A DNA stretch of 64,000 bases from Klebsormidium nitens (Eukaryota > Plantae > Klebsormidiophyceae), in NCBI GenBank assembly GCA_000708835.1, contig DF236981.1:1-64000 (forward strand). The letters run 5' to 3'. The notes beneath the pieces were generated by a model, which saw only the letters and a program-made list of their open reading frames with translations, did no database searches and was not told the origin of the DNA. The position numbers were made by a program, and so were the translations under genes. Shown in pieces: positions 7,351 to 55,500 of this stretch. How positions within the stretch are numbered: the stretch's first letter is position 1; every line of letters begins with the position of its first letter.

Positions 7351-8490
7351 TCAGAAAAAGACCCCGAACGACAGATCGTCCCGCTTGATCGCCCGCAGGA
7401 ACTCTGCTTGATCCCCATTCAGGCCGCTCAAAATCAAGGTGCTCAGGCTCTCCTTCTCCAGCAGCGGCGCCAGGGTCGCCAGCTCGACACCGCCGATATC
7501 TCCGCCGCCCTCCAAGCCCAAGTCCAGAACCTTGAGCTCCTTCAGACTGCACAGGCACTCCACGATCTCGTCCAGGCCACTGTCTTCGACCGTGCCCACG
7601 TGGATCATTCCAGACAAGCTCGCATATTTCAAATAGGGCGCCTGGCAGGCGATGCTGCGAAAGGTGTCAATGAACAAGTCCGCGTCGCTGCGATAACTGT
7701 GATTGTGCCCAAAGACCGACAGCCGCTCCAGGTTCCCCATTATCGGCCACGGCTCCCCAAAAGTCTCCCCTTCGACCGTCGTCTCCTGCAACACCTGGTA
7801 AAGCCCTTCCTCGCCGATCATCTGATCGGGCGAATCTCTGTCCACGATAACGAGCTCAGTGAGGTTCGGGAACACAAATGGCTGCACTATCGAATAAGCC
7901 TCGCAGACCATGTCGAGCTTGAGATACCGAACGGACTCCCCTCCTCGAATGCTCTCCATTGAGAACATAGGAACACTGTTCTTCACGAACAAGTTCACGG
8001 GCCCCTCGCCGAGCTCAGCCAAGAAAAGCTCAATCCCCTTCCAGAGATCCGGGGCAGCGTCGGATCCGCACGACGTAGCGCCCACCTCGAAGCCGAGCGC
8101 GCGCAGAGACTGCCCGTTCTTGCCCACCAACAACAGGGCGTCTGCCAAGGCGATCTCGTCCTGCCAGATGTCGTCATGCACGATCATCAATTCCTTCCAG
8201 ACGACCCTGCACAAGCCAGCTGATTTCACTACATTCAAGAGAGACGTATGAATCTTGAGCACCTCCAGCGACTTGTACTCATCGCAGAAGGAGAAGCTCC
8301 CGTTCTGCTTGCTCAGGCACCTCTCAGGATCCACCAGGCAGAGGCTCTTTGCATTCGCCCTAAAGTGCTGTAAGAAACTGCTGCACACCCACTTCGCGTG
8401 CCGCCGGTAGTCCTTAGGGCTCTTGTTCTTAAACTTGTCAAGTATGACGTTCACGAGATCGAGCGGCATACGCGCGAATTGATCCGCCAT
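7351..8490 (-). CDS. Intronless F-box-like / leucine-rich-repeat (RNI-like) protein, 379 aa
   Basis: Uninterrupted ORF from ATG 8490. N-terminal MPLDLVNVILDKF..PKDYRRHAKWVCSSF resembles the F-box consensus; LRR-like units FPNLTELVI, GNLERLSV, PYLKYASL, KELKVLDL, ESLSTLIL. Confidence 0.7.
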   Translation of the reverse strand: MADQFARMPLDLVNVILDKFKNKSPKDYRRHAKWVCSSFLQHFRANAKSLCLVDPERCLSKQNGSFSFCDEYKSLEVLKIHTSLLNVVKSAGLCRVVWKELMIVHDDIWQDEIALADALLLVGKNGQSLRALGFEVGATSCGSDAAPDLWKGIELFLAELGEGPVNLFVKNSVPMFSMESIRGGESVRYLKLDMVCEAYSIVQPFVFPNLTELVIVDRDSPDQMIGEEGLYQVLQETTVEGETFGEPWPIMGNLERLSVFGHNHSYRSDADLFIDTFRSIACQAPYLKYASLSGMIHVGTVEDSGLDEIVECLCSLKELKVLDLGLEGGGDIGGVELATLAPLLEKESLSTLILSGLNGDQAEFLRAIKRDDLSFGVFF

Positions 8491-9436
8491 AGCGCCTCGT
8501 CTAAAGTCCCCACAAACAGAAGGAGCGCCCCGTCGGAAACTTGCAGAATCGCCCACTTGCTAAGAAGCAGCTTTGCAAATGACCAAACTGGGAATGACCT
8601 CAAAAACAACAGCCCTCGACTCGGCCACTCTCGGACAGCGGTCGCGCCGCGCCGCCGCGCGCCAAGCCCAGTCATCATGTTCAAGCTCGTACATAAGTAT
8701 TGGCCCGCCGTGCTGGACGCATGCAACGAGTCCGTACGAGCTTGTCGCGCGCCGCAACGAAGATCATCTAAAACCGCGCGCCCGATGCCCACGTGAACTT
8801 TGATGTCGGCCTCTTCGAAGACACCGCACTGTCAGCATCGTACGCTTGCATGCATGCACGTCTTGATCAAGAAGTACAAAATGCGGTCACGTCGAACAGC
8901 CCACCTCATGCAAGCCGACCCCAACGAGCTTCCTGTTCGTAATGGCGGCACTCAGTCTCTTGTTCAAAGAGCCCAAACTCCGTTGAAATCTTCCTCTTTC
9001 CCTGCAAGACTGTGCGAAACAAAGGCGCCCGTGGCTTGGCCTTCCTCCGCCGTGCAAAGTGCTGGTGATGCGCGTGGCGGTGCGTCTGCTGAAAGAACCA
9101 CTTGCGGGCGGCGCTGCTGGTGAGTTATTCTCATCATATGGCTGCTCGATCGACCGCGCAGCTGATGAGACCTACCCACATGCTCGACCCTGAAATCGTA
9201 GAACAAAATGAAGCCATTGTGAAATATCCTGCGGATTTCTGTCGGCCCATTAAAGGATCGAGCTTCACTTCCGCCCCTTCCTTCTCGTCCAAGCACAATC
9301 TGCCGATTCTCAGCCTTGCTGCAATACTTTGCCGGCCCTTCCGAATATGATTATATGAAAACGTGATTCACGCAGTGCGTAGTTCGAAAGCTTCTCGTTC
9401 CTATTAAGACCGTTCTAAGGCATCCTGCGAGATTGT

Positions 9437-10690
9437 TTCTTCCCTCTCTATACGTGGACTTCGCCCCACCCCCCCTCCCCTTTCTCGTCGAATTGTAGAA
9501 GACCAATGCCGTGAAGTCTCCGTAGACGCGCCTCGCCCTTGCTCGCCGAGAATTTTTACAAATAAGCCAAAAAAACAGCCCACAACAACCAGAACTGCTT
9601 ACGGACTTGATGTCATCCTACTGGGCCGAGCCCAGGTCTAATGACTCACTCTGATCCGTCCGTTCTGGCCATACCTTCCGAATATGTCGGCGTTTAACTG
9701 GTTATGCGTGTTGTAGCTGTCTCCCTTGCCGGGCGAGTGCAAATCCACACATCTCTACGACACCGCTGATACGTTTCAGACGCTCTGCTTATGATGACTG
9801 CAAACCTTGTCCTCCGGACAAAAATAGTTTGCTCTTAGGTCTGATTTCATTCATGGTTTTTGTTCTGGTCGTGATGATCGGGATTCGCTCTCTTCCTCGA
9901 AAGCACATCTGTTTGCCCGGTCTGACACCTCCGATACGTTCCACATTCTAACGTTACACTGACGTCACCTTACATCTGGCACATCTAATTGCTTATTTCT
10001 TCATTTTTCAGTGTTTAGTCCCGTTCTCTCGTTCCTCTATATGTGGGCTTCACCCCACCCCCCCTCCCTTTTCTCGTCGACTTGCACAAAACCAATGCTG
10101 TGAAGTCTCCGTAAACGCGCCTTGCCCTTGCTCGCAGCGATCGACCCCACCTCACCGACATTGTATTTACAAATAAGCCAACAAAACAGCCCACAACAGT
10201 TAGAAGGCCAATACTGCGGAACTGGAACCCTTGTCGGCTTATTGTTATGTATCTGTTTGCTCGACATTCTGTTTCGATAACGGACGTGACGAACTTGATG
10301 TCGTCCTATTGGGCCGAGCCCAGGACTGATGACTCGCTCTGATCCGTCCGATCTGGCCATACCTTCCGAATATGTCGGTTATGATTGCTGTAACTGTCTC
10401 TTGTGCCGAGCGAGTGCAGATCGACACATCATTCTCTATGACACCTTTGACAGTTTTCAGACGTTCTAGTTATGATGACTGCAAACCTTGTCCTTCGGAC
10501 AAAAGTAGTTTGCTCTTAGGTCTGATACCATTTCATTTATGGATTCTGTTCTAGTCGTGCTGATCGGAGTTCGCTCGCTTCCTCGAGAGCACATCTGTAG
10601 GCCCGGTCTGATACCTCTGACGTCACTTTAAATCTGGCTCATCTAGTTGCTTATTTATTTATTTTCCTGTGTCTAGTTCCATTTCCTCTT
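9437..10690. repeat. Diverged tandem duplication of a ~0.6 kb non-coding unit (copy 1 ~9437-10023, copy 2 ~10024-10690)
   Basis: Colinear blocks throughout (ccccacccccctcc, gtgaagtctccgta, aaataagccaa, tgggccgagcccagg, atgatgactgcaaaccttgtcc, tgacgtcac). Copy 2 has insertions. A shared 13-mer ccttccgaatatg also occurs at 9337. Confidence 0.95.
9601..9925 (+). ncRNA. Putative box C/D-like (K-turn) hairpin RNAs, three per repeat copy (9601-9659, 9791-9844, 9871-9925; paralogues ~10291-10347, 10472-10525, 10557-10611)
   Basis: (R)TGATGA-like box C and CTGA box D pairs enclose hairpins, with U-rich spacers. The first unit has a 5-bp terminal stem (acgga/tccgt). I found no convincing rRNA antisense guide, and the units are short for snoRNAs. 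Confidence 0.3.
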
Positions 10691-10820
10691 TCCTGAAAAA
10701 TGCTCCCTCCAGCATCGTCACCTCCACCGTTTTCCAAGTGTACCTGAACCGCGCCACGCGGCCGCCTTCTCAGCCGCGATTCACGGCCCAATCTCGCGCT
10801 CCACCTCCTTGCAGGCGACC

Positions 10821-11878
10821 ATGGCACAGGGCATCAGCGCACAGCTGCTGATACCGAAGCTGCGGCCGTACCTCCCCGACGACGCCATCATCAGCCAGGA
10901 GGCGACCACCGGATTCCAGCAATCTGTCACCCACCCGTCCGCAAACCGCACCCGCAACATGGATTTCCTGGGGACGAAGGGGGACATCGTCCTGAAGTAC
11001 TGCCTCTGTCTGATGTTCTGCACCGAGAACCCGAACGTCCGGTCCCCCGGGCAGCTCTCGGACGCCGTGGCTGGGGCTGCAAACAACGCGTCCTGGCCCA
11101 CGTGTACAGGGACCCGCTCGGGCTAGAACCCGAGGACATCGCCGTGGGGGGGGACTACGCATACGCCAACCAACAGCGCTCGGTACACAGGCGCGGCACT
11201 GTGGTAGAGGCGTTCCTGGCCGTCATCGACCACCACCTAGGACTGGACGCCTGCAGGGTGTTCGTCCGCAGGGTCTGGAGCGCCTTCTTCCGGAGCCAGG
11301 GGGTGGCGTTCACCACCTTCAAGCACTACGACCCCATCTCCCAGATGGAGACGAAGCTAGCGCAGCACATGGAGGGGCAGCCCAAGGACTGGCTGGCGGT
11401 CCACGAGGATGGGCCCACCGCCCAGGGCCAATTCTGGGCAGAGGGCGGCATCAAGTCTGCACCGTACGAACTGCTCAGGGGCCCTGTGTACGCCCGGTCC
11501 AAGAACAAGGCGAAACGGGCGATCTACACCGAACTCGATTCGGACCCGCGTCTAACGGCCTTCATCACCAACCACGTCAAGCCGCCGAAGAAGAGCAGAT
11601 TGGCGCGCCCGCTGGTCGCCGCGGCAGATGACGCGGCCGCGGGGACGGGCGCGCAGAGCTCCGCCGGAGACACGGAGGCAGCCACCGGAACGGACGAGAC
11701 GGACGGAAAGCCGCCGAAGAAGAGCAAACCGGCGCACCCGGCGCGCGCGGCGGCCGGGAACGCGGCCGCTGAAACCGACGCACCGAGCTCCGCCGCGGAT
11801 ACGCGGGCGGCCGCCGGATCCAGCGGAACAAACGGACTGCCGGAGCCACCCGCAAGTTCCGGCACGGCGCCCGCATGA
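10821..11878 (+). pseudogene. RNase III-like protein (RNase III domain + dsRBD + duplicated basic tail), split by a 1-nt deletion at ~11092; an intact ~352-aa CDS if this is an assembly error
   Basis: Joining frames gives ...DFLGTKGDIVLKY...PGQLSDAVAGAANNAS/LAHVYRDPLGL...RRGTVVEAFLAVIDHHLGLDACRVFVRRVW (RNase III fold pattern), then DPISQMETKLAQ..EDGPTAQGQFWAEG..ARSKNKAKRAIYTEL (dsRBD pattern). No intron in the CDS; a possible acceptor lies just upstream of the ATG. Confidence 0.75.
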
Positions 11879-12470
11879 GCAGAATGCTTGCGGATTTGCG
11901 GGCTGCAGACAGGGTACCCAGTGTAATCGGATGGCTGGCTCACCGGCGGCGTTACTCAAAGTGCGGGCTGCCATACAGAGTCGTCTCGTAGCAAACGTAG
12001 CACAGTTCATTCTACATAATGCTAGAACCTTCATAGAGTCTGAGATAGCTGCTCGGAAACGATCCTGCTGAAGTGTGACGGCGGAAGACACTGACTCGTT
12101 CTGTATAGGCCTCCAACAATTTTGTCCCAGTCGCTCAGAACGTTCCTTCTACATCCCAGCCGAACTCAAATGATGACGCTGATTGCGTCGACCTTGTACA
12201 GTCACTTTGTTTCTCATCGGTCCTACTTTCGAGTTTGCTTCACGCTCTACCTGCCGCACGCATCGGCGTCGGCGCGGCCGCGCGCGGTTAGCCCGATTGA
12301 ATTATTCCATGCAAATATTGAACTTCAAGTACTACTAAAATTACGTAATATTCGGTCCGATTACCGTCCGATTGCAAAATCCACACATATCACCCCCGTA
12401 CGACCTCTGTCCATACGAGCCCGCTTACCCAGTGGCCAGCGTCCTGCATTGGTATGCTACCATCCTGGTT

Positions 12471-13034
12471 CCACGTGTCACAGCCACTCTCCTAGATGAC
12501 GTCAATTAATCTGGTGATGTGACTAACTTACACTATGCTGTCCCTGCTCATCACGGCAAAATTAAAAACACCAAGAGAAAACTTTGACACAGGGCAAGCC
12601 AAGTCGGAAATATATTGTATAAGGGGTCTCTGACGTCACTAAGCCAAGGGTCCACAAAATTATAATTGTCGTCATGATGGAACCGACTGGAAGCCTCCAG
12701 CGTATACCGAGGGAATTTTTCTCGACTCCAAAAGAAAGTGGTCAGCGCAGAACTGAGCCTTCGTACGGGGTTCCGGACACGATCCGGACGGGACTGCAAG
12801 ACACCGAGTCACGATACCGCCCTCACTTTTCTGCACTATAAAAGCGGACAAATCCAACCATCATTTCTCATTTCCGACTTTCCGAGCTCCGGATTTCTGA
12901 GTGCGCAGGCGGCGGCGCCCAGGGTCGACCAGCAGGGCCAAGAAGGTGACGTCAGAAGCTTGCTGACGTAATATTTAGAATTATACAGTGTGTTACTATG
13001 TACAACCGGTAAACTTAGCCTAAGTTTAGGCTAA
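12471..13034. promoter_or_regulatory. Cluster of bZIP-type palindromic sites, TATA-like box and nested hairpin
   Basis: CACGTG near 12472; TGACGTCA at 12497, 12631 and 12947; TGACGTAA at 12964; TATAAAA near 12837; overlapping inverted repeats at 13011-13034. Function is not demonstrated. Confidence 0.3.
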
Positions 13035-13518
13035 ATACACCCTATCTATCGAATCCAACCGGGAAGCATGCCCTGAAAATGCTGTAAACGTCTCTGTTTC
13101 CATCCCTGGACGGCGAAATGGGGTACATTTGATTCTGGGGAATGGCAAGTTAGCTGCACAACAGCATAGATTCTGGGTTGATGGCTGCATGCGAAATGGT
13201 CGGCTGTGAGATCTGAACTATCATAGAATATTTTCATCGAATCTAGTTTTTGCTGCTCATAGGGTGAGAAATGCCGTTAAGCAGGATCGTGCCACCTTTG
13301 TGAAGCAGATCAGACTTGTGCAACAGAGTACTGGTCTACAGGTAAACTTTTTGGGACCTTGACCATGTCATTTGGACCAAATCGGACCTCCGGCGTAGGC
13401 ACTGTTTTGTGACGTGATGAGATCGCCTAAGAGTAGGCCCATGAACAGGAGCTAACGTAAGGTGCAACATTAGGAGCAGTCTGATGTGTCCATTGCGACG
13501 GGTCACATAAGCCTACAC

Positions 13519-16500
13519 ATGGCCAGGGTGTCAAATGTCATTCAGGATAGGAGAGGCGGGTCGAAGGCTATCAACTTGAAAGGCAGCTCGGGAGCACTCC
13601 TGGTTGATGGCATATTTGCGACGCGTTTCCTGCGGCGCGTCGAATACGCGGTGCGGCAGGGGCTGGCAGTGGGAATTGCCTGCATTTGGGTGCTGATCCC
13701 AACAATTGCATCCCCTTTCTCTCGGTGAGATTCCTTACACCAAGTTCGATAGAAAAGAGTAATGATTGATTAAACTTCGCCGGACTGCAGGCTTCAAGGC
13801 AGCAACCGAGCATTGGAAGTTTGTCTGCCAAGATGCAGGGTCATGCACTGCTGTTGTCATCTCTTTTTCATTCAATTGTCGCTTGAACGTGAACTGAGAG
13901 TGCTAAGATACCACTTTGCATCTGCAATCTTACGCTCCCTTTCCATGTCAGTCACCCGGCAACTTTCACATTCCATATCGTGGGGACGTATGCTGAGCAA
14001 AGTCCCCCTGCACAGTTGCAAAGACAACTGCATCTCAAGTTTTCTCAAGCTATCGCTTGTCTGGTCCTCGCTCCAAGCTGCATCGTGCTGAAGATACCGT
14101 AGGCTCTTGGACATGGAGAAGAAAGAAAAGTCTGGCATACCATCTGGTGGCGGATGCTGTTTGTGTGCCTGCTGGCGTTGACACGCTGTCTCTCGGCAGG
14201 GTTGCCTTCTTGGCAGCAGTGCTGGCACTCATTTCGTGTAACGAAAACTTTGGCCGCACTATTCGAAGTGGTGTGCTATGTCTGCTGGCGGCGGTTGCGG
14301 GTGCGCTCCTGGTGACGGCATGGCATGAGGCCGTTGGCACCTCCTACGGTGCCAGCTGGGGAGGCGTCGCGCTCTTCAGCTTCCTGCTCACTTACCCGCG
14401 CTTCGACCCGCTCGCCCTCAAGATTGCGCAAGTGCTCAACGTGTCGAGCCTCATCACATTCCACCTTACCCCCACCCTGCCATGGTGAGGGGCGGGGCAG
14501 TGCTGCCTGTTGCAAGAGACATGTGCGCTCTAGACTTCCACCAGAGTGAGATCAGCTCTGATAACCAGCACCCACCGCTCGTTCCATTCATGCTGTAGCT
14601 TACTTCGTCGCATCAAAAGAACGTTCGCCGCACTTGCACAATGGATGGAGGCATGCCATCAGCCATGGAATGGCATCTGACATGCATGCTTCGGTGATTT
14701 TTTTCAGGTACTTTCCTTTCCAGACGGCTGCTGCATGTGCTGTCGGGTGTGGCTCTGCGATCATTGCCCTCGTCCTGCCGTACCCCCGCGCTGCATCTGC
14801 GGAGGCCAAGACGCGCGTGGCCACCGCCGCCAAAGTGTCCACTGCCATCTTCAGCTCCCTGGTGGAGTCGTACACGGCGCTCTCGGTGAGGACGACCACT
14901 CTGCCCAGCTAAGGACCTCGGTGTCCAGAACCGTCGCGACAAGGACAAATGGTCTGTGGCCACAGAAATTCTGACAGCTCAGCAAATCAGTCCAAGGAAA
15001 AGGCAGAACACTCCTCATTGCGTTGCCCCTACTTCATGTTTCGGACCACTGAAGCCAACCATATAAACTCATGCGGACCTTTCCCCCTTGTTGTGACCCG
15101 ATTCATATGCGTGGTCGCTTGCAGGATGAGCGCGCAACATTCATGCAGCTCCAGGCGGCATATCTGATGCAAAGCGCAGACCTGAACCTGGGCTGGTTTC
15201 AGGCGGTCGTGTCCGATCTGAGCTGGGAGCCCTGGGTACGCCGCCGCTGGTCGCGCCAGGTGGCAGCCTACGTGCAGCTGACCAAGGAGCTGACCACCTG
15301 CTTGCGCGGCATGCACCGCGCTGTCACGGACTGGGACCTCCAGAACTCAGCGCACAACCCCCTGGTAAGCCACCGGGTGCCCACATCTAGCGTGTATTCA
15401 AACGGCTTCGAAGTCGGCTGAGTCGTCCGAGCTTCTGAGAGACATAGAATATGCCCATCACTCTAATAGACAAATGACGGCATGACGGCAAATGTCGTCA
15501 ATACATTGTAAGGCTGCTAAGCAGTGGTCGCTGCTGGCTTGTCTCATGCAGAAGAGCAAGATGGCGGCCGCCCTGCGGCGCCTGGGCATGTGCACGGGGT
15601 ACTCGCTTGGCCATGAGGCCGCTCTGCTGCGAGGCGCGCACCACGATCCCCCTGATGTCGCGGCAGCCGGGGGCGCCTGCCTGGAGGAGAGCGTGCTGAG
15701 CGATTTCCTGCATGATCTGCAGCTGGCAAGGTTGGTGCTTTCGAAATGATTACATTCGTCACAACACTTTTCGGATTGCAAGGCCACGATGAGCACGTAT
15801 CTCGGCGGCTTGGTTTTGGATTGACAGGCGGTATTGTCTGGGCTGCAGAGAATATGCATACTACCGGGAGCCGTATACCGAGAACGGGCAGGTGGTGTTC
15901 CCCAACGCGCCGCTGTGGGGCATGCTGGCGTCCTCCTTCTTCCTCTTCCATGCCTACCAGTACGCGTGCGCAATTCACAAGGTAAGCACACGCCTTGCAG
16001 CATTACACTGGCGCTGACTGGACTAGGCTTCTTCAAGTGCCGTCAAACAATTGCTCGTTCTGCCCTCCTTGCGGGAGGAGGGGTGTGACGTGTGCTGTGG
16101 AGGCTTGCGAAGGCAATGACTCCAAGAATAGTCCGTTCACGAAGTGAGGGGCACAGGGTGTGCCTGGCTGCTTCATTCAGTCGACTCTAAGATCCTGATT
16201 GGTACACTGGTACAGGCGCAGGTGGCCCTGGCCCAGCTCGGCGAGGCAGGGGCGCAGCGGGAGAGCAGCGCAGGCGAGGACGAGCAGGCGGAAGCAGAGG
16301 AGGGACAGGCAGACGATCCTGCGCCCCAGAAGGGCGGCCCTCATGTTGTGGCACGCAAGGCCACGTCCGCTGCAAAGGTAGGCCGCCCAGGCCTGTGAGA
16401 GACCTCGTCTGGGTGAATCACGAGGCTAATCAGGCGCTGCTCGAGATGGACCTTGTAACGAGAACGTGCCCAAGTTTCTCTTGACCCAGTCCCGCACGAC

Positions 16501-52590: not shown

Positions 52591-55500
52591 TTATTCCCGG
52601 ATGTACGTCTTCTTTACGAGGAGCTCCGCAGGTACGCTATCGTTCTTCGCCCGGTTTTTGACTTCACTCGGGGGAGACGGCATTGGGCTGGTGGGGGGCT
52701 TGAGGTCGGGGTATTGCGTATAAGGGCTAAGCGGCCGGTTGGCATATGGCAAGTCCAGGGATGACGACCGCGGGAATGCGCCGTTGCCTTGGGAAGCCTC
52801 GGCGCCATCGTCTTCGCCGTCTTCGCCTCCTTCGCCGCCCTCCCACGGCCACTTGAACGCTTTTACTGCGGAACGGATGCCAAGTCAGAGTGCGCCCAGA
52901 AGCGAGGCCAGCAGACAGGGAACGACCTCACTCAGACTGTATGTTAATTCTCGTATGAGAGAAATCAGCAGACGAGTTCAATGTCATTTCAAGCGAGGAG
53001 TGGAGGCCATAACCAGCCAGAACGACGAAGTATTTGAAAGTGCTGGGAGCTATGTAGCGGAAACTGCACGGTGAGGTCCAGAACGATTCTTGACCCGACG
53101 TCCCGACGGCTGAACAAAATTGCAGGACACATCTTGCATACTTGGATCAAGAACCCCATGATGCAGCGACAAAGGCGTGATGCCCCGGTGTTGGCAGCTG
53201 ACCTGTCTCGGCTGCTTTCTCGACGGGCTCCGCAATGGGCGCGCCCTCCCACGGCCACTTGAATCCCTTCACGTCCTCCACCACTTCCTCCACCTGCACG
53301 CACACCCGCCCATCCGTGAATCGGCGGTCAAAATGATACCGCAGCCAAGCAGGACCGCTTTCTGGTTATCTCATAACCAGAAATACACGCGGCCAGCCTT
53401 TGGTGTCGCAAGAGTCTGACAGGAGGGAGAAGTACTGCAAGCTGTGCGAAGCATGCCCTTTTTAAAAGCCCCGCGGCGATTGAGCGATAATTAAGACATG
53501 CGAAGCATGTCCTTTTACCCCTCCCCTTAATTCTCGTACAAGAAACGTACTGGCACAGCGATGCCAGATCTCCACAGGCAAGGGACGGATGACGAGCCCC
53601 TTTTCGTGCAATTGCTCGTATCCGCCCCCTTCCGACCTGCCATTCGGTTGCCTCACCTTCTCCTGTGCCGCCTTGACCGGCTCGCTCTTCTGCACGTCCT
53701 TGGCAGTCGCAGTCACCTTGGAGGCGGCCTCCTTGGCAGGGGCCGGGGCAGCATCGACCGCCTTCTCGACAGCCTGCACAGCACACCGTGCCGTCAGCAA
53801 GAGGCTCGCTGTGCGACCGGCCTTTTGGAACACATGCTCGGGGAGCGCAGACGAACGGAGACGATAAATCAAGAGCTTCGAAGAGGTACACGGGAGTAGT
53901 CCCCGCAGTGGCAGACCGAATATATCTTTATAAGGTTCCAACAGGAGTATTTTTGCAGCTGACTTGCCGTGAAGGAAAGCCCGCAGACAGGGGACTGGTC
54001 CCTTGGCACTCCGACTTGGCAGAAATAGGTCAAAAGTAAGGCACACCCCCGCGCTCGTGGCTAGATTGTGACCCACCTTCGGCGCTTCCTTCTTGATATC
54101 GGCCACCACCTTGGGCGCCTCTTTCTTCACTTCCTCCACCACCTTTGGAGCCTCTTTCTTCACGTCCTCCACCACTTTAGGCGCTTCCTTCTTGACCGCT
54201 TCCACCACTTTCGGCGCTTCTTTCTTCGCTTCCTCGACCGCTTTCGGCGCTTCCTTCTTCACCGCTTCCACCGCTTTCGGCGCTTCCTTCTTCACGGCTT
54301 CCACCGCCTTCGGTGCCTCGCTCGTCGTTTTCTCTGCGGCTGCCTTGGCGGCCGCCTGTGCTGCCTCGAGGCCGCTCTTCCCCCCCGCCGGGATGGGCGT
54401 GGGTGACGTGGGCGGTTTCAGATCATCATACATTGTGTACGGGCTCAGGGGCGTCGGCGAGGGGGGGAGGTCCGTCGACTTCTTCGCCTCGGGGGCCGCC
54501 TGTTGCTCCTCTTCCTCCTCTTCGGGGGCTTGCTGCCAGGGCCATTTGAAGCCCCCCAGAGCGAACTTCGGTTTCGACTCCTCCTGCCGGGACTGGTCCT
54601 CGGCGACTGCACCAGAGATGACGCGCTGGCGTTCCTCCTCCTTGCGACGCTCCGCCTCCGCCTTGGCCTTGGCTTCTGCGCACACGGGAGGAGCACGCAA
54701 GGAGTCAGGACGTGACGAGGTCAAATTCAGGGCCTTCCATTGGTCCACTTGTCGTACCTGAACATCGAACTGTCGCGAGCCAATAGTAGAGCTCAAACCG
54801 AGATTCAAGAAGGCCGCGCAGATGCCGTCGATTTCTGTTATGGTATTCGCGACTCACGTCTGTTTGAAAACCCACTGGCTCCAGAAATTCAGGAGCAGTG
54901 CAAACCCGATTCAGATCCAAAACTGTGCCACTTCACATGGCATGTGAGTAGAACACGTCAAAGAAACCGCTTTTAGAGTCAGTTAAAAGAGGGCCCAGCA
55001 AAGCTCCGTATTCATTCTCCCTTTTTCCATCAAAGCGCTCTGCCGACGGACCCGGTTATGCAAGGCCTTCATCGCGCTCAATACAAACCGTCGTCCGGAA
55101 TAAATCCACTCACGCCCGACGCTGCAGGTCTCGTTTCGCCGCTCCTCACCTATTTCCTTCTTCTTGGCTTCCACGTCCGCCTTCTTCTTCTCCTCCTCCT
55201 TCTTTTTCCCCTCCTCCTTCTTCTTCTGATCCGCCTCCGCTCGCTGCTGTGCCAACACACGCGCTTCCTCCTCTTGCTTCTTCCGCTCGGCTTCCTTTGC
55301 CGCCGCCTTCTTTGCCTCCTCTGCGTCCCTCTCCGCCTTCGCTTGCGCCTCCTTCTTCTTCTCCTCTTCTGCTTTCTTCGCCTCTGCGTCCCTCTCCGCC
55401 TTCGCCTGCGCCTCTTTCTTCTTCGCCTCTGCCGCCTCTGCTGCCTCTTGCTCTTTCCGCTTCGCTTCTGCGGCCTTCTTAGCATCCGCAGCCTTCTTTT

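Follow-up and report, generated by a model that had tools for sequence, protein, structure and literature searches.

The window analysed here is a 64,000-nucleotide stretch of the genome of the streptophyte alga Klebsormidium nitens (assembly GCA_000708835.1, positions 1 to 64,000 of DF236981.1; window and scaffold numbering are identical). It contains, at DF236981.1:10821-11878, a hidden single-exon gene that encodes an RNase III domain followed by one double-stranded RNA-binding domain (dsRBD) and a duplicated basic tail. The locus carries the public annotation KFL_000320050, which, like the second K. nitens copy of the same family, is listed as a 'hypothetical protein' without any domain. 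In the reference assembly, the gene is split by a one-base frameshift, and an intact form is present in public K. nitens reads from two independent studies. We favor, with moderate confidence, the interpretation that the locus is a nuclear gene with a single exon, that it belongs to a small, undescribed algal family with the class-1 RNase III architecture, that its reference allele was broken recently and that an intact form of it exists. Sequence profiles and structural models suggest that the family is a new, divergent class-1-type subfamily of RNase III. A literature search yielded no paper tying Klebsormidium to a protein of the KFL_000320050 type.

An undescribed RNase III-like lineage is hereby added to an alga that is used for reconstructing the origins of the small-RNA pathways of land plants. 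The family also amounts to a natural experiment on the RNase III site, in which two of the four catalytic acids have been replaced family-wide on a class-1 scaffold with a dsRBD. Should the protein prove to cut double-stranded RNA (dsRNA), such a reduced site would not be peculiar to the Mini-III enzymes that lack a dsRBD.

The split reading frame and its intact form

A reading of the window made from the sequence alone (hereinafter, the sequence-only reading) had proposed that two open reading frames (ORFs) join into one protein of about 352 amino acids (aa) upon addition of a single base, and the joining indeed yields 352 codons. The ORFs, at 10821-11126 (frame 0) and 11102-11878 (frame -1), are both on the plus strand and are offset by one frame; with one base added between them, no stop interrupts the sequence, the frameshift itself aside. 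The C-terminal ORF is 100% identical to K. nitens KFL_000320050 (P0001, 329 aa). The parts of the gene are as follows:

10821..11087, plus strand: N-terminal piece, frame 0, codons 1-89, ending ...GAANN, with no gap at its end relative to the relatives
11088..11089, plus strand: position at which the reference lacks one base; in intact alleles the sequence is G-C-C, codon 90 being GCC (Ala)
11090..11878, plus strand: C-terminal piece, frame -1, codons 91-352 and the stop, beginning VLAHVYRD and adjoining the N-terminal piece in the alignment
11042..11109, plus strand: 'intron' of the public model, 68 nucleotides, GT..AG, restoring the frame; most likely an annotation patch over the frameshift

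In the MAFFT alignment of the family, the product of 10821-11087 ends in ...AANN and that of 11090-11875 begins with VLAHVY in the very next column, such that the junction is gapless against the relative P0002 (AAAENASLACIYRD) and all other members. The G+C content at third codon positions (GC3) is 0.865 in each piece, read in its own frame. Because the relatives match at E values of 1e-38 to 1e-9 and both pieces show this GC3, the gene lies far beyond chance. The missing base is a C, as proposed at the outset; its place, however, is behind 11088 (at the C of 11089), not in the CC run at 11092-11093. The proposed site was three bases off, which alters only residue 91: this is V (...NNAVLAHVYRD) rather than S.

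Logan contigs from four public runs (X1-X4) were compared over 9500-13000. A C put in behind 11088 is found in contigs of X1 (study P1, depth 34.8) and X4 (study P2, depth 12.5); it opens the frame as ...GAANNAVLAHVYRD..., to a total of 352 codons, and all the contigs that carry it share three synonymous changes (10992 C>T, 11030 C>T and 11081 A>G). The insertion is absent from contigs of X2 and X3 (sample shared with X4), which have 11009 T>C instead; in X2, the two forms overlap at 10964-11028 with comparable depth (5.6 and 6.5). Given that the broken form is found again on a haplotype distinct from that of the reference (at 11009), it is more than an assembly slip. The sequence-only reading had considered the break a possible sequencing indel; the reads at the site carry both the broken and the intact form in nature. 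The two forms may be alleles, strains or two near-identical copies, and their presence in public reads provides a ready-made natural knockout comparison.

Among the seven coding substitutions, five (10992, 11009, 11030, 11081 and 11581) are synonymous, and the other two are Y216D and K230E; 24.9% of the sites being synonymous, the probability of at least five of seven under neutrality is 0.013. The private G>A differences of run X1 were left out of the variant counts, no other run sharing them. Over 9500-13000, G>A differences outnumber C>T differences in X1 by 16 to 4, most of them being private (e.g., 10817 and 10824), a bias that would fit a bisulfite-type library.

The annotated 68-nucleotide intron is most likely a patch introduced by the gene predictor over the frameshift, and hence a clear example of a lesion masked by an invented intron. 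The public model runs from ...NPNVR directly to DPLGLEP..., so that P0001 is without SPGQLSDAVAGAANNA.LAHVY. That the model is correct, i.e., that a true intron at 11042-11109 is spliced out to yield a 329-aa protein, seems to us highly improbable, even if the GT..AG ends restore the frame and splicing occurs in other genes of the window, such as the ALMT/FUSC gene (1264 aa across 7.4 kb). The 23 residues encoded by the 'intron' are kept in every full-length relative and include the NxxLA motif as well as part of the predicted dimer interface (see below); its GC content, 0.71, is coding-like, compared with about 0.50 in the non-coding flanks; the full-length relatives with fetched contigs are each one continuous ORF; and the allele with one extra base reads straight through 11042-11109. 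No splice joint was found in the contigs of the four runs, which are DNA-like and hence are no test of splicing.

A small family of relatives

When P0001:1-240 was searched exhaustively with phmmer against 1.84 billion representative proteins, 16 proteins were returned at E <= 1e-3. Two of these, P0010 (6147 aa) and P0016 (622 aa), are not relatives but repeat proteins, the scores of which accumulate from numerous very short repeated matches; the remainder make up a small family that includes a K. nitens paralog. The true relatives show 25-42% identity, with E values from 1e-38 to 3e-6. A word-index protein search with the C-terminal piece retrieved only its own annotated protein, whereas the family alignment brought in at least one new member (P0018). 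In the metagenome contigs of JGI, no close relatives were found.

The second K. nitens member, KFL_006390040 (P0005; core ORF L002:8086-8739), is about 40% identical to the first one. Apart from this member and the disrupted copies described below, the members derive from metagenome or Logan contigs. The ESM Atlas gives Chlorophyta as the most frequent known phylum in the top feature cluster, possibly that of the family itself; the label is unverified.

Plant RTL1 and RTL2 keep the canonical catalytic acids. They resemble the present family in being small eukaryotic proteins with an RNase III domain and one or more dsRBDs. The two proteins act in the nucleus or the cytoplasm (PMC8708148). No canonical RNase III and no RTL protein (RTL1-3) was recovered at E <= 1e-3 among the 1.84 billion representatives, and therefore, the gene is not a retrocopy of an ordinary plant RTL gene, the routine origin that the sequence-only reading had set against its own proposal.

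Domain architecture and fold

The domains of the joined protein are located as follows:

10842..11299, plus strand: RNase III-like nuclease domain, about residues 8-160 of the joined protein, from the family profile and the P0002 model
11345..11539, plus strand: dsRBD with the alpha-beta-beta-beta-alpha order and the basic motif SKNKAKRA, from the model of the C-terminal piece, the family profile and the P0002 model
11574..11831, plus strand: two 129-bp (43-codon) tail units, each opening with KPPKKS(R/K); rich in Ala, Gly, Thr and Asp and predicted to be disordered

The evidence for the RNase III-like domain and the dsRBD, both of which had been called from the letters of the window, comes from profile searches and from structural modeling. 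In single-sequence phmmer searches against the PDB, the C-terminal piece and P0001:1-225 found nothing, and the N-terminal piece gave a weak match to the RNase IIIb domain of Drosophila Dcr-1 (E 0.056). A family profile that was built with both window pieces included matches, in the same database, RNase III of Thermotoga maritima (1o0w) at E 9.1e-9 over profile positions 28-244, that is, across the nuclease domain and the dsRBD. The same profile matches Drosophila Dicer-2 (E 3e-8), Escherichia coli RNase III (7r97, E 8.2e-8) and the RNase III proteins of Campylobacter jejuni and Aquifex (E 2e-5 to 2e-4). The NCBIfam model TIGR02191 (ribonuclease III) matches 12 of the 15 members, with the best E value of 5e-10, although P0002 reaches 26.7 bits against a curated cut-off of 166 bits; no other NCBIfam model recurred across the members. 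With the Pfam models, P0002 scores 23.9 bits (cut-off 27), and dsrm matches a single member of the 15 (E 0.0047).

The AlphaFold2 model of P0002, made from the family alignment, has a mean predicted local distance difference test score (pLDDT) of 86.4 and a predicted template modeling score of 0.74, and consists of an all-helical domain, an alpha-beta-beta-beta-alpha domain and a disordered tail. Foldseek ranks the complexes of E. coli and Aquifex RNase III with dsRNA at the top of the matches to this model. Alignment with VIA-align gives the following scores and root-mean-square deviations (rmsd):

C. jejuni RNase III, nuclease domain: Z 18.3, rmsd 2.5 A, 146 residues
E. coli RNase III, including the dsRBD: Z 17.1, rmsd 4.7 A, 219 residues
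Aquifex aeolicus RNase III: Z 16.8, rmsd 4.5 A, 212 residues
RTL4/NFD2: Z 16.4, rmsd 2.5 A, 141 residues
Mitoribosomal mL44: Z 15.9, rmsd 11.4 A, 215 residues

The nuclease domains of C. jejuni, M. tuberculosis and Aquifex align with P0002 at Z 16-18 and rmsd 2.0-2.5 over 143-148 residues. Compared with the Atlas model of P0001, bacterial clusters with RNase III and dsrm domains give a template modeling (TM) score of 0.64-0.70. For the window itself, the model of the C-terminal piece has a pLDDT of 61 overall and 66-83 in the dsRBD (piece residues 86-150), where the expected elements appear in order: helix 86-95, strands 100-107, 115-121 and 130-135, and helix 138-150. Altogether, the profile match that extends through the dsRBD and the Z scores of 17-18 of the P0002 model bear out the two-domain call.

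The closest known counterparts are the bacterial class-1 enzymes (E. coli Rnc, A. aeolicus and T. maritima RNase III), which likewise consist of one nuclease domain and one dsRBD, share the G-D and E-A motifs with the family, and provide the best profile and fold matches. Unlike these enzymes, the family has a signature that is one residue longer (NMDVPAxYGD as opposed to NERLEFLGD), a basic disordered tail and non-acidic residues at the positions of E41, E65 and D114 (E. coli numbering); it is only 16-22% identical to them in sequence and scores far below the TIGR02191 and Pfam cut-offs.

A homodimer with the interface on the signature helix, as in bacterial RNase III, is predicted for P0002. 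For residues 1-172, the interface score ipSAE is 0.48 and the best control 0.00, a result that may reflect memory of solved RNase III dimers; among proteins with solved structures, 21 of 30 pairs but none of 23 single chains reach this ipSAE mark. At least 91% of the contacts are common to the three runs, with the partner pLDDT at or above 85, and the symmetric interface comprises residues 50-65 (the signature helix) and 74-89.

The duplicated 43-aa tail unit reported by the sequence-only reading was verified, both in its 129-bp period (1.9 copies, 75% matches) and in the two KPPKKS starts, KPPKKSR at 11579 and KPPKKSK at 11708. The two copies, 11574-11702 and 11703-11831, match at 71%. The tails of the relatives end in KKRK, KKGK or KRK motifs, and in P0002 the tail has a pLDDT below 50.

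A reduced active site

The catalytic positions were mapped by hidden Markov model (HMM) alignment to T. maritima RNase III and by MAFFT alignment with four canonical RNase III proteins. Two motifs hold the relevant residues:

10962..10985, plus strand: signature motif D48-F-L-G51-T-K-G54-D55, in which D48 corresponds to E38, G51 to E41 (acid lost) and G54-D55 to G44-D45
11198..11209, plus strand: T127-V-V-E130, with Thr at the D114 position and Glu at the E117 position

Across the family, these positions are occupied as follows:

E38 position: Asp-48 in K. nitens; Asp or Glu in 11 of 13 members
E41 position: Gly-51; Ala or Gly in 13 of 13
G44 position: Gly-54 (GD at 10980-10985); Gly in 13 of 13
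D45 position: Asp-55; Asp in 12 of 13, the exception (Asn) being the disrupted L011 copy
D114 position: Thr-127; Thr in 12 of 15, Ser in 2, Asp in 1
E117 position: Glu-130; Glu in 15 of 15

Inspection of this alignment shows a non-acidic residue at the E65 position as well. The Asn of the NxxLA motif is present in 14 of the 15 members. Thus, among the four catalytic carboxylates (E41, D45, D114 and E117), an acid is kept only at D45 and E117. The GD and T-V-V-E coordinates given by the sequence-only reading are correct, and the loss of the E41 acid that it suspected is confirmed by Gly-51 and by the Ala or Gly at this position in 13 of 13 members. Because the residue pattern is conserved across the members, it is a family trait and not private decay, and in the alignment it looks like a maintained site rather than a drifting one.

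In Mini-III, the E41 and D114 positions are occupied by Ala and Thr, i.e., a non-acidic residue and a Thr three residues before the catalytic Glu, and the protein is an active homodimeric enzyme. The designation of the site as 'Mini-III-type' in the sequence-only reading holds only as a residue analogy, with the E41 and D114 acids lost and D45 and E117 kept, and not for kinship: no Mini-III is found among the 27 sequence matches in the PDB (E <= 1), the top 50 Foldseek matches or the top 50 VIA-align matches, and hence, the likeness is chemical at most and not one of descent. Furthermore, Mini-III (MrnC of Bacillus subtilis; plastid RNC3/RNC4 of plants) lacks a dsRBD (PMC5141509), whereas the present family has one. 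On the residue pattern of Mini-III, the literature yielded only the E106Q mutant of the B. subtilis enzyme, which is inactive, E106 being catalytic (PMC5141509).

Under the favored interpretation, the following scheme can be outlined. A recent one-base deletion at 11088/11089 would have broken the frame in the reference haplotype. The intact protein would homodimerize through the signature-motif helix, in the manner of bacterial RNase III, bind dsRNA through the dsRBD and probably be carried to the nucleus by the KKxK/R tail. The reduced metal site, Asp-55 and Glu-130, might cut dsRNA weakly or selectively, with Asp-48 and Thr-127 possibly assisting in place of the E41 and D114 carboxylates.

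In known pseudo-RNase III proteins, the D45/E117-type residues are usually lost. The principal alternative to a weakly or selectively active enzyme is such a non-catalytic pseudo-nuclease, in which the fold and the dsRBD are kept and the protein only binds dsRNA or partners another RNase III, as in the case of mL44, maize RNC1 and RTL4/NFD2; the conserved Asp and Glu would then serve structure or binding. We consider this possible, albeit on balance unlikely. The proteins with degenerate sites share the RNase III fold and reduced catalytic residues with the family (mL44 also the dsRBD), and two of them, mL44 (Z 15.9) and RTL4/NFD2 (Z 16.4), are nearly as close structurally as true enzymes, while the E41, D114 and E65 positions are non-acidic throughout. 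The family differs from mL44-type proteins in keeping D45 and E117 almost invariantly, in an identity to mL44 of only 10-11% and, as judged by inspection, in having a basic tail instead of an organelle presequence. Mutants of E. coli RNase III speak to both sides: E41A and D114A keep weak activity in excess Mg2+, and E117K/A/Q are inactive (PMC8708148, Table 1), although E117 mutants still bind dsRNA. The two residues that the family retains are those the loss of which impairs E. coli RNase III most severely, and G44, the NxxLA Asn (14/15) and the acid at the E38 position (11/13) are retained along with them.

Counterevidence and the possibility of decay

Several observations weigh against the interpretation that we favor. 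A Pfam check stayed below threshold on the window pieces themselves: Ribonuclease_3 scores 13.1 bits on the N-terminal piece (E 0.17, cut-off 27), and the Pfam models, PF00636 and PF14622 among them, match neither the C-terminal piece nor P0001 nor the dsRBD stretch. The fold and dimer tests were made on the relative P0002, which is 36% identical, and not on the joined window protein. The tail is a plausible nuclear targeting signal by motif resemblance only. Two ligands of the canonical two-metal site are absent, and accordingly, the family protein may not cut at all. In 19 public runs guessed to be RNA, next to none of the gene's words are present.

Damaged copies elsewhere in the family add to this list. 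The sequence-only reading had recommended a search for intact paralogs; the K. nitens paralog KFL_006390040 (L002:7978-8892, DF237588.1) does not qualify, as its family-like start, MAQT, is followed by a TAG at codon 5 (ATGGCGCAGACCTAG). The copy at L011:9668-10471 combines an in-frame TAG within the nuclease domain with the Asn at the D45 position, and in that at L009:3745-4480 (L009/L010; GCA_003428985.1, SRR7517648), the nuclease domain is cut off from the dsRBD by a frameshift and a stop. Several damaged copies fit a decaying family.

The corresponding alternative is that the gene is a dead relic, in which case the family would be undergoing decay in K. nitens, the intact allele would merely have escaped damage so far and neither paralog would now be functional. 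Both reference copies are broken, by the frameshift here and by the TAG in KFL_006390040; two metagenomic loci are disrupted; no RNA run contained the gene; and the locus adjoins dispersed repeats. Nevertheless, we deem outright death of the gene quite improbable, considering that a single lesion is present in 352 codons, that the differences between the haplotypes are mostly synonymous (P = 0.013), that GC3 is maintained in both frames, and that the catalytic-site positions are conserved among relatives that are 25-42% identical.

The public model of KFL_006390040 (280 aa) has its N-terminus swapped for exons up to 2 kb upstream, bypassing the TAG, and is the second case in this genome of a spliced model that masks a lesion.

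Genomic neighborhood and possible mobile origin

Upstream of the RNase III-like gene lies KFL_000320040, a 401-codon single ORF at 7351-8556 on the minus strand, in divergent (head-to-head) orientation. It is homologous to ORFs at L003:142-1271 (minus strand; 38% identity over 222 residues, E 5e-46; frameshifted there) that occupy the same position and orientation next to the family member P0013 on a metagenome contig, and the RNase III-like proteins of the two loci are only about 25% identical. According to the language-model features of the Atlas, KFL_000320040 falls among F-box and F-box/LRR clusters (0.93-0.96). Pfam finds no F-box or other domain in this protein, and so the F-box call derives from the language-model features. 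On another contig (L004), a different ORF with a weak F-box match lies 2 kb from P0017. KFL_000320040 and the RNase III-like gene may be a conserved gene pair, which is a lead and not a finding.

A bolder version of our interpretation posits an active nuclear, dsRBD-bearing RNase III with a two-carboxylate site, in which Mini-III-like chemistry was reached independently and which forms a functional pair with the F-box/LRR-like neighbor. The range of the family may be confined to green algae, for which K. nitens and the unverified Chlorophyta label are the only support. We hold this full combination to be a long shot. If true, the pair could be a module for dsRNA surveillance or silencing control, connecting the cutting of RNA with the ubiquitin-dependent turnover of proteins.

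That the gene is a passenger of a giant virus or a mobile element rather than a host gene is very unlikely in our judgment. The gene is intronless, and both the Atlas and BFVD list RNase III proteins of nucleocytoplasmic large DNA viruses (NCLDV), which combine RNase III and dsRBD in intronless genes, as fold neighbors (Foldseek E 5e-8 to 1e-5); in addition, the copy on contig L011 lies in DNA that also contains chromovirus remnants, a TnpB-like ORF, HNH_3 and a resolvase and is accordingly repeat-rich eukaryotic DNA. However, the NCLDV matches, at 10-15% identity, are no better than the bacterial or Dicer ones, and three queries against 2.9 million IMG/VR contigs recovered no close relative. 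At the K. nitens locus, no terminal or inverted repeats that would mark a transposon flank the gene, the GC3 of 0.865 was taken to match that of the neighboring host-like gene (0.753), and a homologous neighbor gene is common to this and a distant locus. One IMG/VR candidate, L013, was a chance match over 44 residues and was discarded.

Directly upstream of the gene, 9446-10694 is a tandem pair with units of about 590-690 bp that are 77-92% alike. Parts of this region recur in the paralog locus (L002:12420-12491, 82%) and its contig depth is raised in public runs; for these two reasons, we regard it as a dispersed repeat inserted between the divergent genes.

The contig of P0008 (L012:1-9000 and 10001-14042) carries Ty3/gypsy chromovirus remnants (gag, reverse transcriptase, RNase H, integrase and chromodomain), a weak TnpB/Cas12f-like ORF, an HNH_3 endonuclease, a GH9 fragment and a serine resolvase, and looks like a mobile-element graveyard in a eukaryotic genome. 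Far from the gene, at 54040-54369, the window contains about ten 33-bp tandem units that are 61-80% alike.

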